A stretch of 64,000 nt of DNA, taken from IMG/VR virus record IMGVR_UViG_3300032214_000715, positions 62,001 through 126,000 of that record, one strand, 5' to 3'. The first letter of the stretch is position 1; the number at the start of each line of letters is the position of its first letter. The notes beneath the pieces were generated by a model that saw nothing but the letters and a program-made list of their open reading frames with translations, searched no databases and was not told the DNA's origin. The position numbers and the translations under genes were made by a program. Shown here one piece after another: positions 977 through 62,060 of the stretch.

Positions 977-1093
977 TTATCGTATAAGAAATTGAAACGA
1001 TAGAATCGCAATCATCATTACCACTAGAATATGACCTACATTCTGCCAGAATGTAAAGTCTTTACTATAAAACCACTCTAAAATAGACTTCAT
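977..1093 (-). CDS. Small membrane protein (38 aa)
   Basis: MKSILEWF...VVMMIAILSFQFLIR, one hydrophobic segment; below ORF-track cutoff. Confidence 0.4.
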   Translation of the reverse strand: MKSILEWFYSKDFTFWQNVGHILVVMMIAILSFQFLIR

Positions 1094-8815: not shown

Positions 8816-9275
8816 ACCAAATCTCTTTGAAGCCTTCTTCTTCAGTGGGCATTTCAAAATTTTGAATCATAACGCTAACCACATTCCACGGAATAGTTTT
8901 TCCTGGACGATTTGACAATCGTGTCAGTAATTCGCTTTCAGCCGGTGTACGAAACACTACCGCAATCGCATAGTAGTTAGACAGCATGTTGAACTTCTTT
9001 TTTCTGCTAATGACTGACGTAGAAGTTTGATCCCAGATAATATCCTTGCCTTCATCCCGCGCCCGTACTACATCGTCTGCCATTAGTTTTACGGCATACG
9101 GCATGTAGTCTCGAAAGACTTCACTGTAGGTTTGACCCACTGTATTGGCATAGTTTTCTACATGAGCGTCTGTGCTAACAATAGCACAATTTTTAGCCCA
9201 CTCTTGATTTTTGATCCACGTAGATTTACCACTACCTGGAACACCAACTAATACATACAACTTTGGCTGACTCAT
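8805..9275 (-). CDS. P-loop kinase (AAA_33 / polynucleotide kinase-like)
   Basis: GVPGSGKST Walker A; start at MSQPK. Confidence 0.8.
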   Translation of the reverse strand: MSQPKLYVLVGVPGSGKSTWIKNQEWAKNCAIVSTDAHVENYANTVGQTYSEVFRDYMPYAVKLMADDVVRARDEGKDIIWDQTSTSVISRKKKFNMLSNYYAIAVVFRTPAESELLTRLSNRPGKTIPWNVVSVMIQNFEMPTEEEGFKEIWYAN

Positions 9276-9362
9276 TTGTTTTCCATTTAATGATTGATGT
9301 AGTATACTATAGACTGTATTTTTTGTCAAACAAATTCTATGTTATTTATTCACGTGGGAAAT

Positions 9363-9386
9363 AAAAAAGCACCCGAAGGTGCTTTT
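9363..9386 (-). terminator. Intrinsic terminator after tmRNA coding piece
   Basis: AAAAGCACC-TTCG-GGTGCTTTT plus T-run. Confidence 0.85.
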
Positions 9387-9655
9387 AGGTTTTTTCTGTT
9401 GCCCGGTATTTCCTACCGCGATAGCCGGTTTAGGCAGCCATCAGGAATGCTTCATTGTTAGCATTTAAAGGTTTTGCTTCTACAGTCGAGATATCTCAAC
9501 ATTAACGACTTCTGCTTTGCCGATTCTAATCATTTCTTATTAGCTCCGTCGAATCCTTTCATCCCCATAAAAAACATTATATTGCTTTTTATGAAAATGG
9601 TGGAGATGCCGGCATACGATAGCCGGGTCCGCAACTCATCAGATAATGACTTTCA
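9387..9655 (-). ncRNA. ssrA: Two-piece (circularly permuted) tmRNA; tag (A)ANNEAFLMAA
   Basis: Acceptor piece ending CATCTCCACCA (9598) lies upstream of GGGGATGAAAGGATTCGAC (9566); 7-bp acceptor with G3.U; tag frame 9462-9430. Confidence 0.9.
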
Positions 9656-9666
9656 AGGAAAATATC

Positions 9667-10353
9667 CTAGCGAATATTTTTATTTATCTCAATCATTCTG
9701 CCAATTTTTATTAGTTCAGTTTCATATAGCATTCTTCTTTCGTGTGATTTTTTACCTTCGTCAAGATTTACTAAACAACCACTATGAATTATAAGCCCAA
9801 AAATATCAATTAGCTTGGATTCTATCGACAATGCTTCATTTTTTGTCATGTTTTCTTTAAGAATAGATACTGAAATTTCAGAACCAGATTTTTTTATTTT
9901 TTGACGATATTTTCTATGCGAATCATTTCTATCTAAATCGTATGCTCTAGATCCTTGACCCATTCCTATATAAAATGGCTGATGCTGCATTCCAATCGTC
10001 GCCGCAAAAGTAGTGACTCCGTGTTTTCCTATAGCTATTTTTTTAGAAGGATCACAGTGAGCATAAACATAATAAGAATTATCAGTGACGTCTTCGTTAT
10101 ATAAATGAAGAATATCTGTGTTGTAAATGTTGACGCACGACTCAAATACTTCTTTTGAATGCTTATTCTTAGAATAATGACCGTGATTGGATCTCAAATT
10201 ACCTAACATATTTTTTGACCACGTCAGTAATTTTTTTAGTTCTTCTTCTGATTGCGAATCAACTTCTATATTCCATATAGAAGTATTACGTATCTGACCT
10301 TTAGTGTCAGTGACCTGTTTTCTTTTTATTTCCATACTAGTAGTATAAGACAT
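9667..10353 (-). CDS. GIY-YIG (LEM-3-like) homing endonuclease
   Basis: YYVYAHCDP...PFYIGMG...R, plus EALSIESKLI and LVN. Confidence 0.8.
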   Translation of the reverse strand: MSYTTSMEIKRKQVTDTKGQIRNTSIWNIEVDSQSEEELKKLLTWSKNMLGNLRSNHGHYSKNKHSKEVFESCVNIYNTDILHLYNEDVTDNSYYVYAHCDPSKKIAIGKHGVTTFAATIGMQHQPFYIGMGQGSRAYDLDRNDSHRKYRQKIKKSGSEISVSILKENMTKNEALSIESKLIDIFGLIIHSGCLVNLDEGKKSHERRMLYETELIKIGRMIEINKNIR

Positions 10354-10375
10354 TTGAATGATAAGTCAAGTAATT

Positions 10376-10440
10376 TGGCGCAATGCTAGCCGTCCGGAAC
10401 ACTTTTCTCTTTGCTTCTTTCCTTACGGTCTTTACAGCAA
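10376..10440 (-). pseudogene. Possible truncated first copy of the tmRNA acceptor piece
   Basis: Follows TATAAATA (10444-10451); GTTCC-GGAC can pair with GGAGC of the coding piece, but no T-loop or CCA follows. Confidence 0.45.
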
Positions 10441-10466
10441 TAACTTACAATACTATTTATATAGTA

Positions 10467-10658
10467 TTACCAATTCTCCACGCTAGAAATTACAACTTCA
10501 AAGGTGCCTTCAATATCACCAATCTTAGTTTGAACTTTCATAGTAACAGTAGCGCCAATACCGCTGCTATTGTCACTTTCTACTTCAAAAAATTCCACAT
10601 CAGGAAATTTCTTTGACAGTTCAACCATCTTTTCTAAGTCATCACGATGTAGCAACAT
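10467..10658 (-). CDS. Hypothetical protein
   Basis: MLLHRDD..., overlaps upstream gene. Confidence 0.6.
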   Translation of the reverse strand: MLLHRDDLEKMVELSKKFPDVEFFEVESDNSSGIGATVTMKVQTKIGDIEGTFEVVISSVENW

Positions 10659-11130
10659 TTTGCTTACTCTTAACATATTCACGATATTCACGCTGCCAAT
10701 TATGTTCTTCGGGAACATCGTATGGCAATCCTAATTCACCCATCATAAGACGCATTACACGTGTATTTGGACTACGAAATCCTTCTACTAGCATAAAGCC
10801 CATATGTTCACCTACTTGTGCCACTGCGCCACTACGAGCTACTCCTGCGTAACAGTGTACTACAACATTCATATTCTTGTCAAGTGCGTGACGCAATAAA
10901 CCAACCAATTCTTTTGCTTGTGACTCACTGATAAACATTTCAGGATCATCAGCTTCATCGTTGTCATCAATATCAAGAAATTCAAAACGATAAATTTCTT
11001 TGAATTCATGCTTTGGTGTAGGGAACCAGCCTGCTGGATCCATAATTTGAATTAGCATAGAGTTTGATCCAGCTTTGTGATGGTGTCCTATAGGCACATC
11101 GGCAGCGGCTACATTTTCAATCCAGGGCAT
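10642..11130 (-). CDS. Protein tyrosine/dual-specificity phosphatase-like
   Basis: VHCYAGVARS (CX5R). Confidence 0.85.
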   Translation of the reverse strand: MPWIENVAAADVPIGHHHKAGSNSMLIQIMDPAGWFPTPKHEFKEIYRFEFLDIDDNDEADDPEMFISESQAKELVGLLRHALDKNMNVVVHCYAGVARSGAVAQVGEHMGFMLVEGFRSPNTRVMRLMMGELGLPYDVPEEHNWQREYREYVKSKQNVATS

Positions 11131-14752: not shown

Positions 14753-15029
14753 TGGTGGGACCAGGGGGGTTCGAACCCCCGACCAACGGATTAACCTACC
14801 ACTATAGTTTTCACTACCAGTTTCCTGTTTGTGGTCTGGACTATACCTTCATCGTATCATTTCTGACTTAGATGCCCGCCGTCTAGTCTCTACACGTTCC
14901 CATTACTGGGCTTCGCTCGGTATCGCCATTTTACAGGGTTCACCGAATTTGACGGGTTCTACTTACAAAATTTCTTTTGTAGCACTCCTATTTTAAAGTC
15001 CGCTGCTCTACCGACTGAGCTATAGTCCC
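14753..15029 (-). tRNA. tRNA-Lys(TTT), intron-containing
   Basis: Exons 15029-14996 and 14794-14753 rebuild GCGGA-CTTTTAA-TCCGT. Confidence 0.88.
14795..14995 (-). mobile_element. Group I intron (about 201 nt, no ORF) in the tRNA-Lys anticodon
   Basis: AAATTCGGTGAA, GTAGAGACTAGACGG and AAGGTATAGTCC core elements; terminal G. Confidence 0.88.
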
Positions 15030-17370: not shown

Positions 17371-17469
17371 TAGCGACCCTTTGTGGGCAGGATTCGAACC
17401 TGCAAGTGGCTTCTATTTCCACTGGCCCTATTAGAGGCCTATGTTTACCATATTCCATCACCACGGGTC
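17371..17469 (-). ncRNA. tRNA-like RNA (type II body, bulged 9-bp acceptor, abnormal anticodon loop)
   Basis: D-arm, long variable arm and perfect GCAGG-TTCGAAT-CCTGC T-arm. Confidence 0.6.
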
Positions 17470-20118: not shown

Positions 20119-20439
20119 TGGTGCCCGGAGCCGGAATCGAACCGGCACGGCCGAAGCCGAGGGATTTTAAGCGTGTTGTCTCAAAGTTTCCAATGAGCAC
20201 GGACTATCTCTTTACCTTCAACATTACTTGTTAAGGCAGTGGGCGTTCTATGCTGGTTATTAAGAGGGCTTTACCTCTCCAGTAGTCTCTACACCTTCAC
20301 TGAATGTATTCAGTGCTTGGCTCGCGATTGCCATTTTACAGGCTCTCCCGAATTAACCCACAGTTTACTCACACATTTCTGTGTGAGGGGGACGGGCTTT
20401 CTGGTCCTCCCTTGTGTCTACCTATTTCACCATCCGGGC
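20119..20439 (-). tRNA. tRNA-Leu(TAA), intron-containing
   Basis: Exons 20439-20408 and 20171-20119 rebuild AGGGA-CTTAAAA-TCCCT. Confidence 0.88.
20172..20407 (-). mobile_element. Group I intron (about 236 nt) at tRNA position 31/32
   Basis: TTAATTCGGGAGA, GTAGAGACTA and AAGAGATAGTCC core elements; terminal G. Confidence 0.85.
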
Positions 20440-22470: not shown

Positions 22471-22710
22471 TTCTTGTTCCTTTTTTCTAACTTGAATACA
22501 GTATATCAGTTACCTGATTTATTGTCAACTGTTATCTGTAGTGTGCTTATCAGCCCATCCTGTTAATTCAAGCTATACACCCTTACCAGATGTTCACACC
22601 GTTACATGCGGGGGTTATTTCCCCTATCGTATGCCCCCGTAACGAGAGGCATATGGGCTGATAAACACACTATAGATATCTGTAATGCGTTTTAGGCTGA
22701 AGACTTCATA

Positions 22711-22780
22711 AACTCTAGAGGGATTCGAACCCTCGTCACCGACCGATGGGCCAGTGTCTTATCCGCTAGACGATAGAGAC
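22711..22780 (-). pseudogene. tRNA-like element with short anticodon loop and no CCA
   Basis: D-arm and GAGGG-TTCGAAT-CCCTC T-arm, inside long hairpin 22678-22874. Confidence 0.6.
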
Positions 22781-23108
22781 TCCCTCCTTTTTCGCTCGGC
22801 AAAGCTACTCTGATCGGGGTGAAGTAACAGACCTTCTGACGATTGCCGCCATCAGCCTAAAACACACTACAGATTGTTAAAGAACTGGACAGTTTACGCT
22901 ACTGTCAAACGAAGACCTGTAGGCTATCAGGCTGCCACGCTGATGTTAACACCGATCAACGGGATTGTGCTTCCCGAAACTTCTAGACAGTGACGGTGGG
23001 AGTTTGTTGTCCCGCTTATGTCAACAGTCTCAGAGACCCTGTTTTTTGATCAGTTCTTCAGCGTATGAATACATTATAGTTGAAGACACATTTATTGTCA
23101 AATTTTGG

Positions 23109-32816: not shown

Positions 32817-34652
32817 TTAAAGTTTGCATGCGATGCAATCCGCATCTTCCTCTTCAACCGGAGGAGTAAATTGTATGACATTCTCTGTCTTGTCTGCCAG
32901 AGCGGCTTTTGCGCCCATCTTGTTGATCAAGCTGTAGTACAGACTCTTACCGCCCCAATGATTGTACAACATTAAGTTCTTAGCAATCAAGGTAGCTGGT
33001 ATCTTGCCGCCTTCAAAATGAGCCGGATTATAGAATGTGTTTGTACTGATACTTTGATCCACGTATGCTGCCAATACTGCTGCTGTTTTTAGATAGTCTA
33101 CACAATCGGTTTGGTCCCACATTAGTTGATAGCGATTCTTTAGACGCTTATAGTCAGGCACTACTTGAACAAATGACCCCGCTTTACTTTCTTTGACACT
33201 GATCAATTCCATTGGCAACTCAATCCCGTTAGTACTGTTCAACACTACTGAACTACTTTCTACCGGAGCGATAGCCATTAATGTGGCGTTACGAATGCCA
33301 CTCTTGAGTAGTCGTGCGCGTAGTGATTCCCAATCTAGCGATGGTGTGAAGTCTGTCAACTCATTGACACCCACTGCGCGGCGCTCCCATGGGAATACAC
33401 CCTTACCATACCACGTATGTTCACTGCGACCACAACTGCCACGTTCCTCCGCCAGTTCAATGCTGGCCTCAGTGAGATAATATGCTTGATGCTCCATCCA
33501 ACGCTTGACTTCAGCAAGTGCTTCTGGTGAACCATACTTCAGACCCCGCTTGGCATGCCAGTATGCTAGATTAGTAATTCCTATGCCTAGCGGTTCAAAA
33601 TCACTGTTAGCTAGTTTACTCTGTACACTCAGGAAATCTTGATAACTCAGTAGACTGCTCAGACTACGAACCAGTGTGCGACAACTCTTACGCATGTCTT
33701 GTGGATTACGGAACGCGCCCCAGTTCTGGCTGCCCAGTGTACATAACGAGATACGCCCATTTTCATCTTCTAGTCTCTGAAATGGTTTTGTTGGAAGAAG
33801 AATCTCAGCACATAGATTTGACATATAAATTGGATCAACCTCTGTGTCAAATGATCCTTGATTGATAACATTGTCAATGTTGACCATATAGATACGACCA
33901 GTGTCTGTGCGCTCTTTTAGTATTCCGTTCTTGAAGATTTCTTCTGCTGATAACACTTTACGTTTCTTTGTAGCATCAGCCTCATACTTAACATAGAGTT
34001 CTTCAAATCGCTGTGTGTTACGATAGTATGCTTCGTACAGGTCTGGCACCTCATGCGGATCAAATAGGGTAATGTTTTCACTGTTCTTATATCTGCGCCA
34101 GAATAACTTGCTAACTACAACACCATAGTCTAACTGTCGGACACGCGTTTCTTCTGTGCCTTGGTTGTTCTTGAGTACAATAAAGTCTTCGAACTGGTAG
34201 TGCCAAATAGGTAGATACACAGTGCAGCTAGCATTCCGAATGCCGCCCTGGCTATTGTGCGTCAATACCATAGGACCATTTTCACAATCGGATGCGAAAA
34301 AAGTATGCTCATCTTCTACTGTTATATCTATATAATTAGTAGAATTTTTTTGGCCCACATCACATGCAAGCAATCTTGTAAAACCATGCTCAGTCAAAAT
34401 TCTATCATTAATAGTCAACTCTTTTGGCTTCTTTTGAGAAAAACCATTTTCCCATACCATAAAAGGATGATTTGTCGAACAATTAATTACCGTACCATTT
34501 TCCAATTCAACCCTCACCTGGTCATGTTCTGGAACAATAGTATTCCATTTATCAGTTACTGTTTTAAAAACGATGTTTCTATTTTCGTCCAGTGTTTTGA
34601 TTTTCATGCCTACTTGGAGGTCTTTTATTTGAATTTTTTTAGTAATCGCCAT
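32817..34652 (-). CDS. nrdA: NrdA C-terminal fragment fused to the C-part of a split intein
   Basis: 133-aa IntC ending THN, then SQGGIR; SNLCAE, LCTL and C-terminal CIAC. Confidence 0.92.
   Translation of the reverse strand: MAITKKIQIKDLQVGMKIKTLDENRNIVFKTVTDKWNTIVPEHDQVRVELENGTVINCSTNHPFMVWENGFSQKKPKELTINDRILTEHGFTRLLACDVGQKNSTNYIDITVEDEHTFFASDCENGPMVLTHNSQGGIRNASCTVYLPIWHYQFEDFIVLKNNQGTEETRVRQLDYGVVVSKLFWRRYKNSENITLFDPHEVPDLYEAYYRNTQRFEELYVKYEADATKKRKVLSAEEIFKNGILKERTDTGRIYMVNIDNVINQGSFDTEVDPIYMSNLCAEILLPTKPFQRLEDENGRISLCTLGSQNWGAFRNPQDMRKSCRTLVRSLSSLLSYQDFLSVQSKLANSDFEPLGIGITNLAYWHAKRGLKYGSPEALAEVKRWMEHQAYYLTEASIELAEERGSCGRSEHTWYGKGVFPWERRAVGVNELTDFTPSLDWESLRARLLKSGIRNATLMAIAPVESSSVVLNSTNGIELPMELISVKESKAGSFVQVVPDYKRLKNRYQLMWDQTDCVDYLKTAAVLAAYVDQSISTNTFYNPAHFEGGKIPATLIAKNLMLYNHWGGKSLYYSLINKMGAKAALADKTENVIQFTPPVEEEDADCIACKL
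34254..34652 (-). mobile_element. Split intein C-fragment (133 aa)
   Basis: IKDLQVG, CSTNHPF, YIDITV...HTFF and THN/S. Confidence 0.9.
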
Positions 34653-35739
34653 TTTGATGTTGTTCCTTTGTTATCACTTTAATGTCTGGAAATTTTTTTG
34701 ACATATCATGTTGCTTTGCTTTTAATACTGTTTTGCCATTTCTGGTTTTTCTATAATAGATATCCAATAAGTTCTTTGATTTAAAGAATAAATCATCAAC
34801 TATGTAGAAACACTTGGTGGATAAGTTTGCGTAACTTTCGCTATTGGCATAATACTCTTCTGATGAAATTTGCATATTTTTTCTGTGTAGTAATGAATAT
34901 ACCGCAATTCGCTCTTCATTGGGATGTTTGTAAATCGTTGAATCATACTCATCTTTGGATATCATCCGCTTTTCGCCTGTTCTTCTATCAATGGCTTTAA
35001 ATTCACCATGTGTTACTCCCACGTACTCGCTGTCCTCTTTGTAAAATTCTGAAGCATCAACTATAGAAATTTCGCCAGTCTTTTTATTCTTGGCCGAAAC
35101 TTTGCCCGTAGTAATACCAATATATCTCTCGTTTGAATAGAACTCGTCTTTTGGTATTCTTTTGGATTTCCCGGTTATGCTATCAATGCACATCACATAA
35201 TCTTTGAATTCAGTGGTGTGAAGCATGGGATCATAGTCAACGACTTTAATTTTTTTAATTTCTCCTGACTCGGTTCTTATGTTCATCATACCGCTTGATA
35301 TATGTTTGTGATTTCCAGTTGAATATTCTTCAACCGAAACTCTATAAATTGTACCATCATCCGATCTACATAAAGTAGAACCAGCTCCGCAGTTAGTACC
35401 GCCAGCATTTATCACATTGTAAAATAATGGGTTTTTGCCAACATTAAATTTTTCGTGATACGCCTTTTCTGCATCAAAAGCGTCTGCTCTCGTAGAGAAG
35501 TATTCTACATAAATTTTAAATAATTCTGGATTGGTTTTCATTCGATCAACAAAATCAACAACAGTTGAACTAGAAAAATATCTAGAAAGTAAATCATGGG
35601 CATTAGTGCCCTCAACGCCCCTAGATCCAGAATAATATTTACCGTGTATTGTATCATACACTGTATAACAATAATAAATCGAATTTAGCAACATGTTTGT
35701 TTTTTGTCCGCCGTATGTTTCATATAGATATTTTGTCAT
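34639..35739 (-). CDS. Free-standing GIY-YIG-like homing endonuclease between the nrdA halves
   Basis: YCYTV...YYSGSR, YFSSS, E, FYN and repeated C-terminal modules; start at MTKY after the GAGGGAG RBS. Confidence 0.75.
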   Translation of the reverse strand: MTKYLYETYGGQKTNMLLNSIYYCYTVYDTIHGKYYSGSRGVEGTNAHDLLSRYFSSSTVVDFVDRMKTNPELFKIYVEYFSTRADAFDAEKAYHEKFNVGKNPLFYNVINAGGTNCGAGSTLCRSDDGTIYRVSVEEYSTGNHKHISSGMMNIRTESGEIKKIKVVDYDPMLHTTEFKDYVMCIDSITGKSKRIPKDEFYSNERYIGITTGKVSAKNKKTGEISIVDASEFYKEDSEYVGVTHGEFKAIDRRTGEKRMISKDEYDSTIYKHPNEERIAVYSLLHRKNMQISSEEYYANSESYANLSTKCFYIVDDLFFKSKNLLDIYYRKTRNGKTVLKAKQHDMSKKFPDIKVITKEQHQNGDY

Positions 35740-35778
35740 TTCGTACTCCCTCATAGTTATTTATGAAGGGGTACGAAA
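35739..35778 (-). promoter_or_regulatory. RBS-sequestering hairpin containing a late-promoter-like ATAAATA
   Basis: TTTCGTACCCCTTCATA-AATAAC-TATGAGGGAGTACGAAA. Confidence 0.7.
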
Positions 35779-61622: not shown

Positions 61623-62060
61623 TTAGTTAGCTACAATACGATTTACTCTTACGTAAGTAGCATCAAAAATATCGGTCTTAACCACGCCGTAATCGTTCGC
61701 TTCATGACGAACGATATAATCGTTAGCGGTGGTGTAGTAGAGATTCTGTGGACCACTGCCCCAGTTAACTACTACATGCCCGTCGTGATCGGCTAGTTTA
61801 GCTAGCTTGACGATCTTTACTGGACGACATTCTCCATTACCCAAGTCTTCTTTTGTATTCTTAAAAGTTTCTGGGCTCACGATCCAACGTTCGTTCTTAA
61901 CTCCAGTAAGAATATAATCACCTACACCATACGGCACTGGATTTGGATTTTCAAGCGATACTAATGTTCCAGCTTCAGTTGCGATTTCATATCGCTCAAC
62001 ACGATCTTGCCTTTTATAACACTCAAAAGAATTTGAGTCAAACCACGATTCATCAATCAT
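61623..62060 (-). CDS. Hypothetical protein (PGDYG-like)
   Basis: SLE...GDYILTG...ERW...F; two-repeat layout. Confidence 0.7.
   Translation of the reverse strand: MIDESWFDSNSFECYKRQDRVERYEIATEAGTLVSLENPNPVPYGVGDYILTGVKNERWIVSPETFKNTKEDLGNGECRPVKIVKLAKLADHDGHVVVNWGSGPQNLYYTTANDYIVRHEANDYGVVKTDIFDATYVRVNRIVAN

Follow-up and report, generated by a model that had tools for sequence, protein, structure and literature searches.

How does a phage come to carry a nuclease gene between what look like two versions of one half of its tmRNA gene? This question is raised by a locus in a 239-kb viral record (IMG/VR IMGVR_UViG_3300032214_000715), of which we analysed a stretch of 64,000 nucleotides, positions 62,001 to 126,000, here called the window. 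The tail sheath is about 42-48% identical to those of jumbo phages such as Atu_ph07, Phosso and PA5oct, and the window carries 26 tRNA genes, two group I introns and one permuted (two-piece) tmRNA. An earlier note on the bare sequence had described a tmRNA-like segment that stops where the T arm should be, a GIY-YIG gene behind it, and then an acceptor piece with an 8-base T loop, without a group I core. It inferred a break-and-replace invasion of ssrA. Each of these elements is present, all on the minus strand (Table 1), and the comparison with related contigs supports the inference. A GIY-YIG nuclease gene, together with a complete two-piece tmRNA gene of its own, stands in place of most of an earlier tmRNA gene, of which a 55-base stub is left. 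We consider it likely, although no cleavage data exist, that this gene is a free-standing homing endonuclease gene.

Structure of the locus

Table 1. Features of the tmRNA locus, listed in the direction of the minus strand (positions are those of the window)
Feature	Position	Strand	Description
TATAAATA motif	10454..10461	-	Upstream of the stub; may belong to the old tmRNA promoter region
Stub	10390..10444	-	5' half of the earlier (type A) acceptor piece, with GTGTTCC-GGAC-GG at 10403-10390; ends in GTGTTCCGGACGG, at GGACG(G), one to two bases into the T stem; no T arm, acceptor strand or CCA
Left end of the insert	10336..10389	-	Sigma-70-like promoter: TTGACT (10369-10364), 16 bases, TATACT (10347-10342), ending 6 bases before the ATG
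GIY-YIG nuclease gene	9667..10335	-	222 aa from the most likely start, the ATG at 10335; the open reading frame runs up to 10353
Acceptor piece, incoming (type B) tmRNA	9598..9661	-	P2 strand; GGAC 9630-9627; T stem CCGGC/GCCGG 9626-9622 and 9613-9609; 8-base loop UAUCGUAU 9621-9614; acceptor strand CAUCUCC 9608-9602; ACCA 9601-9598
Intervening sequence	9567..9597	-	31 bases; removed by processing in known two-piece tmRNAs
Coding piece, type B tmRNA	9396..9566	-	Acceptor 5' strand GGGGAUG, giving G3-U70; tag frame 9462-9430 (ANNEAFLMAA, then stop)
Intrinsic terminator	9365..9386	-	Belongs to the old locus

The TATAAATA motif is kept at the same place in two nuclease-free relatives (contigs L115 and L118, see below), but it is not over-represented in the window (7 found, 6.35 expected) and is therefore no evidence of a T4-type late promoter. 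The promoter ahead of the nuclease gene matches at 10 of 12 positions, and the same close spacing between the -10 element and the ATG is seen in two other contigs, L104 and L024. The tmRNA begins six bases after the end of the nuclease gene. Rfam model RF04321 aligns it over 9661-9430 with 82.7 bits against a cut-off of 47, whereas it stays below the beta_tmRNA cut-off (66 against 84 bits) and was missed by ARAGORN. The predicted fold shows the 5-bp T stem and the 8-base loop. No group I intron (RF00028) was detected in 9300-10600 at E up to 1, although the same model does find the two introns elsewhere in the window.

The nuclease scores below the curated Pfam cut-off (PF22945, 19 bits against 27, E 1.5e-3), and a sequence search of the PDB gave nothing useful. 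A word search, however, found 298 relatives of 200-230 aa, and in an alignment of 25 of them the residues Y89 and Y91 (YVY), Y122 (FYIG), R130, E172 and N190 are invariant, so that all GIY-YIG catalytic motifs are present. The AlphaFold model is confident (pLDDT 90.4), and in it residues 84-197 align to GIY-YIG nucleases: PD-T4-3 with Z 7.3 and rmsd 2.7 over 83 residues, the UvrC N-domain with Z 4.5, and R.Eco29kI with Z 2.8. The protein thus belongs to a divergent branch of the GIY-YIG superfamily. Its N-terminal domain of about 85 residues has no recognised family match in Pfam. Full-length relatives are absent from 50,697 deposited phage records, which yielded only distant GIY-YIG cores, and megablast and blastn of 9300-10800 against deposited phages found no match.

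The upstream segment is the remnant of a resident tmRNA gene

Evidence from the window itself spoke against a tmRNA origin of the upstream segment. Local alignment to the phage's own downstream acceptor piece is not significant (p about 0.16-0.19), and a truncated-match Rfam search of 10384-10470 found nothing. The proof came from other genomes, all compared as metagenomic contigs. The last 20 bases before the break occur exactly in five viral and five metagenome contigs (L105-L114), where they run straight on into a canonical T arm (for example GGCGG, UUCGAUU, CCGCC; the loop is UUCGAUU or UUCGAAU), an acceptor strand, ACCA, an intervening sequence and a coding piece. Up to the break 28 of 28 bases match, and local alignment to the type A 5' half gives z = 18. 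The segment has no structure of its own. Rfam scores these alleles at 121-139 bits as tmRNA_permuted and up to 167 bits as beta_tmRNA. A scan of bacterial genomes for the 20-mer gave one short MAG contig with another nuclease-free allele and one chance hit, but no host.

Three relatives, contigs L118, L119 and L115, share both flanks with the window at 88-95% identity, in the gene order phosphatase, 63-aa ORF, tmRNA, AAA_33 kinase, and lack the nuclease gene. Window 11138-10391 corresponds to L118 1481-2209 at 88.5% and window 9395-8805 to L118 2482-3074 at 89.4%; between them L118 has 272 bases of intact tmRNA and the window 995 bases. L119, a contig of 1178 bases, matches 9088-9392 and 10391-11000, with 275 other letters in place of 998. 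The terminator hairpin is shared with L118, L119, L115 and L114. The window has therefore lost the type A gene from the first bases of the T stem to just before the terminator.

The incoming type B tmRNA differs from type A throughout, and blastn finds no similarity between them, but it is not a wreck. The same acceptor piece and loop occur in G001, a related phage (proteins 40-75% identical), and in contigs L103 and L104, and nearly the same loop, UAUCGUAG, with a different last base, in L037. The T stem has changed on both strands in G001 (ACGAC/GTCGT) and in L037 (CCGGT/ACCGG). The 8-base loop is therefore a selected variant rather than damage. The tag changed from ANDAYFGEERLAA in the relatives, as in L118, to ANNEAFLMAA in the window. 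Searches with patterns from the type B coding piece found only G001 and a duplicate of the window, and no nuclease-free allele.

The nuclease family is linked to tmRNA genes in several phage lineages

Of 17 full-length relatives of the nuclease in viral contigs, 11 abut a permuted tmRNA, as do G001, L018, L021, L103 and L104. Of these 11, six have the nuclease upstream on the same strand, two downstream (L037, L039) and two divergent (L031, L032), while in one (L028) the ORF fills the intervening sequence, starting 6 bases after ACCA and ending 2 bases before the coding piece. The junctions fall in the 5' half of the acceptor piece, just after the acceptor piece, or inside the intervening sequence. 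L038 keeps a whole old acceptor piece, followed about 36 bases later by the nuclease gene and then by a second complete tmRNA. L017 and L036 lie by tRNA-like or tRNA genes instead. In G001 the nuclease (62% identical) lies directly 5' of a type B tmRNA in a different neighbourhood; the tag and 3' end of this tmRNA are type A-like, which indicates a shorter conversion tract.

T4-like freshwater phages (neighbours PhoH, PDDEXK, gp59, gp32) provide an independent replicate. According to a script of our own, not a covariance model, about 49 of 80 relatives have the tmRNA directly after the PDDEXK gene. Only one of the 80 (L021, also retrieved as L120) carries the nuclease. Nuclease-free loci such as L193 read promoter, 5' half, GGAC and T arm, whereas L021 reads the same promoter and 5' half up to AAAAGUGUU, then the nuclease gene, then a complete different tmRNA. 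L018 has a shorter stub.

Discussion

We propose with good confidence that a free-standing GIY-YIG homing endonuclease gene, travelling together with its own tmRNA gene, invaded the tmRNA locus of this jumbo phage. The gain of the nuclease gene with a linked tmRNA, the truncation of the resident gene, the variable conversion tracts and the patchy distribution follow from the comparisons, while the mechanism is inferred. The nuclease probably cuts nuclease-free tmRNA alleles of co-infecting relatives in or near the GGAC/T-arm region, and repair from the invaded genome then copies in the nuclease gene together with the linked tmRNA, the stub with its upstream flank serving as one homology arm and the 3' end of the tmRNA with the terminator as the other. 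Nuclease gene and tmRNA are probably transcribed together, from the promoter in the insert to the old terminator. However, the target site is inferred only from the junctions, which spread from about 20 bases before GGAC (L018) to about 36 bases after ACCA (L038) and do not pin down one cut site. Moreover, the closest type B relatives (G001, L103, L104 and the contig of P0002, the closest nuclease relative with 81% identity, whose DNA could not be retrieved) have no stub upstream, and the first insertion may have been an illegitimate join rather than homing. The middle of the stub differs from L118 and from the first copy in L115 and resembles other alleles instead, including a 14-base stretch (10430-10417) shared with the second 5' half of L115. 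The stub may therefore itself have come in with the donor and served as the left homology arm.

The earlier note had also suggested that the altered T loop confers immunity to the nuclease. This remains an inference. The linked tmRNA is presumably not cut because it differs from the overwritten allele across the whole P2a/GGAC/T-arm region, not only in the loop. An odd loop is also not exclusive to nuclease-bearing loci: nuclease-free T4-like alleles have UGCGAAU, UGCAAAU and GGCGGUA loops, and the GUGACUG allele of L021 occurs without the nuclease in L150 and L151.

Among the alternatives, a working partner of the phage tmRNA, for example a processing or protecting factor kept next to it by selection, survives best, but we consider it unlikely. 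The protein sits right next to tmRNA in many unrelated phages and in several orientations, it is unusually well conserved for a selfish nuclease (mean column identity 55%), and its 3' end overlaps the tmRNA 5' end in T4-like phages. On the other hand, close relatives with the same flanks have a complete tmRNA and no such gene, only one of the 80 T4-like loci has it, its arrival destroyed a resident tmRNA gene, L017 and L036 sit by tRNA or tRNA-like genes, and the predicted fold is that of DNA-cutting GIY-YIG enzymes. Still less probable is that two tandem tmRNA genes once existed, with a nuclease gene landing between them and the first copy decaying. L115 does carry a first acceptor-piece copy, a short ORF (45 aa, without a Pfam match) and then a full tmRNA, and L038 keeps a whole old acceptor piece ahead of the nuclease gene. 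But L118 and L119 have a single gene between the same flanks, whose 272 bases after the break are unlike the window's tmRNA, and the window's terminator matches the type A locus, not those of type B relatives. An intron-like insert, with stub and downstream T arm joined at the RNA level, is very improbable: although group I introns are known in the tmRNA T loop (PMC11915505), the window holds two elsewhere and the break lies at the T arm, no intron core is found in 9300-10600 at E up to 1, the downstream gene has its own 5' half that Rfam aligns end to end, so that no splicing is needed, and G001, L103 and L104 have the same downstream gene and no stub. A chance resemblance of the stub to tmRNA, suggested by the insignificant internal alignment and the negative Rfam search, is refuted by the intact alleles and the collinear relatives.

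More speculatively, and rather doubtfully, this GIY-YIG family could be a dedicated parasite of tRNA-like genes that recognises the conserved GGAC/T-arm region of two-piece tmRNA genes and drives whole tmRNA alleles, and so new degradation tags, through phage populations. The member in L028 would then use the intervening sequence as an intron-like safe site, removed by ordinary tRNA processing. Because the overwritten phage alleles are close to host betaproteobacterial ssrA, the nuclease might also cut the host ssrA gene during infection while the phage supplies a resistant tmRNA.

The locus offers both states of the invasion of an RNA gene, namely intact alleles, nuclease-free relatives with the same flanks, and the invaded locus. 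The element neither splices out nor sits between genes, but brings a spare, divergent copy of the whole gene and leaves a stub that can later serve as a homology arm. It has thereby altered what the phage tmRNA writes onto stalled proteins, and such natural allele swaps offer material to test why phages carry tmRNA. Such stubs and divergent alleles are missed by ARAGORN and score low in Rfam. We found no report that links a GIY-YIG endonuclease with phage tmRNA genes in full-text searches, which left out most subscription journals.

Several known systems are comparable. Two-piece tmRNA genes are known from aquatic T4-like phages such as Melnitz and pelagimyophages (PMC9004378), and in the T4-like loci studied here the permuted ssrA likewise lies in large aquatic phages, upstream of the transcription coactivator gene; where that paper mentions tmRNA, no linked nuclease gene and no gene stubs are reported. 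Group I introns in the tmRNA T loop, some with LAGLIDADG endonuclease genes (PMC11915505), are also mobile elements aimed at the T-arm region. Here, no intron was detected, function is kept by bringing a second gene and not by splicing, the nuclease family is GIY-YIG, and the gene is a permuted phage gene, not a standard bacterial one. Genomic islands and prophages that integrate into the 3' end of ssrA or tRNA genes (mentioned in PMC11915505 and PMC9004378) similarly disrupt a tRNA-like gene, restore function with a copy that they carry and leave a displaced fragment. They appear to use a site-specific integrase and short identical attachment sites, while a nuclease and homology-directed repair are the likely route here, the displaced fragment is the 5' half, and the replacement is a whole divergent gene. 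Phage T4 SegB, one of the Seg/Mob free-standing GIY-YIG or HNH homing endonucleases, seems to lie in the T4 tRNA gene cluster and to cut the tRNA region of related phages. It would share with our gene the position next to a conserved RNA gene of a large lytic phage, the presence in only some relatives, and the spread by break repair with conversion of neighbouring markers. In the window, however, the target is the tmRNA gene, the nuclease gene has cut the target gene itself rather than sitting between genes, it carries a full replacement copy, and its catalytic domain is in the C-terminal two thirds. Finally, an endonuclease gene probably also lies inside a functional gene of a T4-like phage in the case of nrdA, split by mobE in Aeromonas phage Aeh1. 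There the two halves presumably still work together, whereas here the upstream half is dead and a full spare gene does the work.

Insertions and conserved elements at related tmRNA loci

Relatives of the nuclease and of the window phage show further arrangements around the tmRNA gene (see table). In L028, a viral contig, a relative of the nuclease fills the intervening sequence of a permuted tmRNA gene. The acceptor piece ends in ACCA and the ATG follows 6 bases later, while the coding piece GUGGGCG, with the tag ANDNSVLAQDFALAA, starts 2 bases after the stop codon. This is an intron-like position that ordinary tRNA-type processing would remove. In L115, a nuclease-free relative of the window phage, a first acceptor-piece copy with the acceptor strand changed to CTGGTCA is followed by about 190 bases with a 45-aa ORF that has no Pfam match, and then by a second 5' half and a full tmRNA. 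This arrangement may be the trace of another invasion of the same locus.

In the T4-like relative L150, a secreted DRGH-motif nuclease gene and a 44-aa ORF lie between the PDDEXK gene and the tmRNA, where L021, the T4-like contig with the nuclease, has the GIY-YIG gene. The gap between the PDDEXK gene and the tmRNA ranges from about 75 to about 2000 bases among the 80 relatives, so it is an insertion hotspot. The nuclease relative with 65% identity, in L017, sits next to the terminase gene and is directly preceded by a tRNA-like element of about 110 bases, with acceptor strands TCTCACC and GGTGAGA, T loop TTCAAGT and no CCA, that Rfam does not call.

A short motif, ATTCGYTAGRR, is conserved just 5' of the tmRNA. 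It is coding in the window and in the related phage G001, where it forms the last codons of the nuclease, but non-coding in the relatives L103 and L104. The motif probably belongs to the tmRNA precursor or its promoter rather than to the protein.

Coordinates of the additional features in the window and in related sequences
Sequence	Position	Strand	Feature
L028	1300-2150		Relative of the nuclease in the intervening sequence of a permuted tmRNA gene
L115	3175-3780		First acceptor-piece copy, 45-aa ORF, second 5' half and full tmRNA
L150	3154-3950		Secreted DRGH-motif nuclease gene and 44-aa ORF
L017	2880-3000		tRNA-like element preceding the nuclease relative
Window	9664-9680		ATTCGYTAGRR motif
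L003	about 9345-9365		ATTCGYTAGRR motif
L104	about 1000-1020		ATTCGYTAGRR motif
Window	14814-15005 and 20180-20414	minus	Two group I introns (69 and 56 bits)
Window	17379-17467 and 22709-22781	minus	Two tRNA-like genes reported by ARAGORN
Window	32817-35754	minus	Ribonucleotide reductase large subunit, apparently split over two ORFs
L011 (Sinorhizobium phage Phosso, PV764938.1 349596-350198)	1501-2103		Alpha-type permuted tmRNA (113 bits)

Other features of the window and a deposited jumbo phage

The two group I introns of the window lie inside the tRNA gene cluster, between tRNA-Asp and tRNA-Pro and between tRNA-Glu and tRNA-Asn. The two tRNA-like genes reported by ARAGORN have unreadable two-base anticodons. 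Intein or HINT matches were found at the start of the second of the two ORFs over which the ribonucleotide reductase large subunit appears split, suggesting an intein or a split gene. Sinorhizobium phage Phosso, a deposited jumbo phage in whose record no feature is annotated at this position, has an alpha-type permuted tmRNA with an intervening sequence of about 400 bases.
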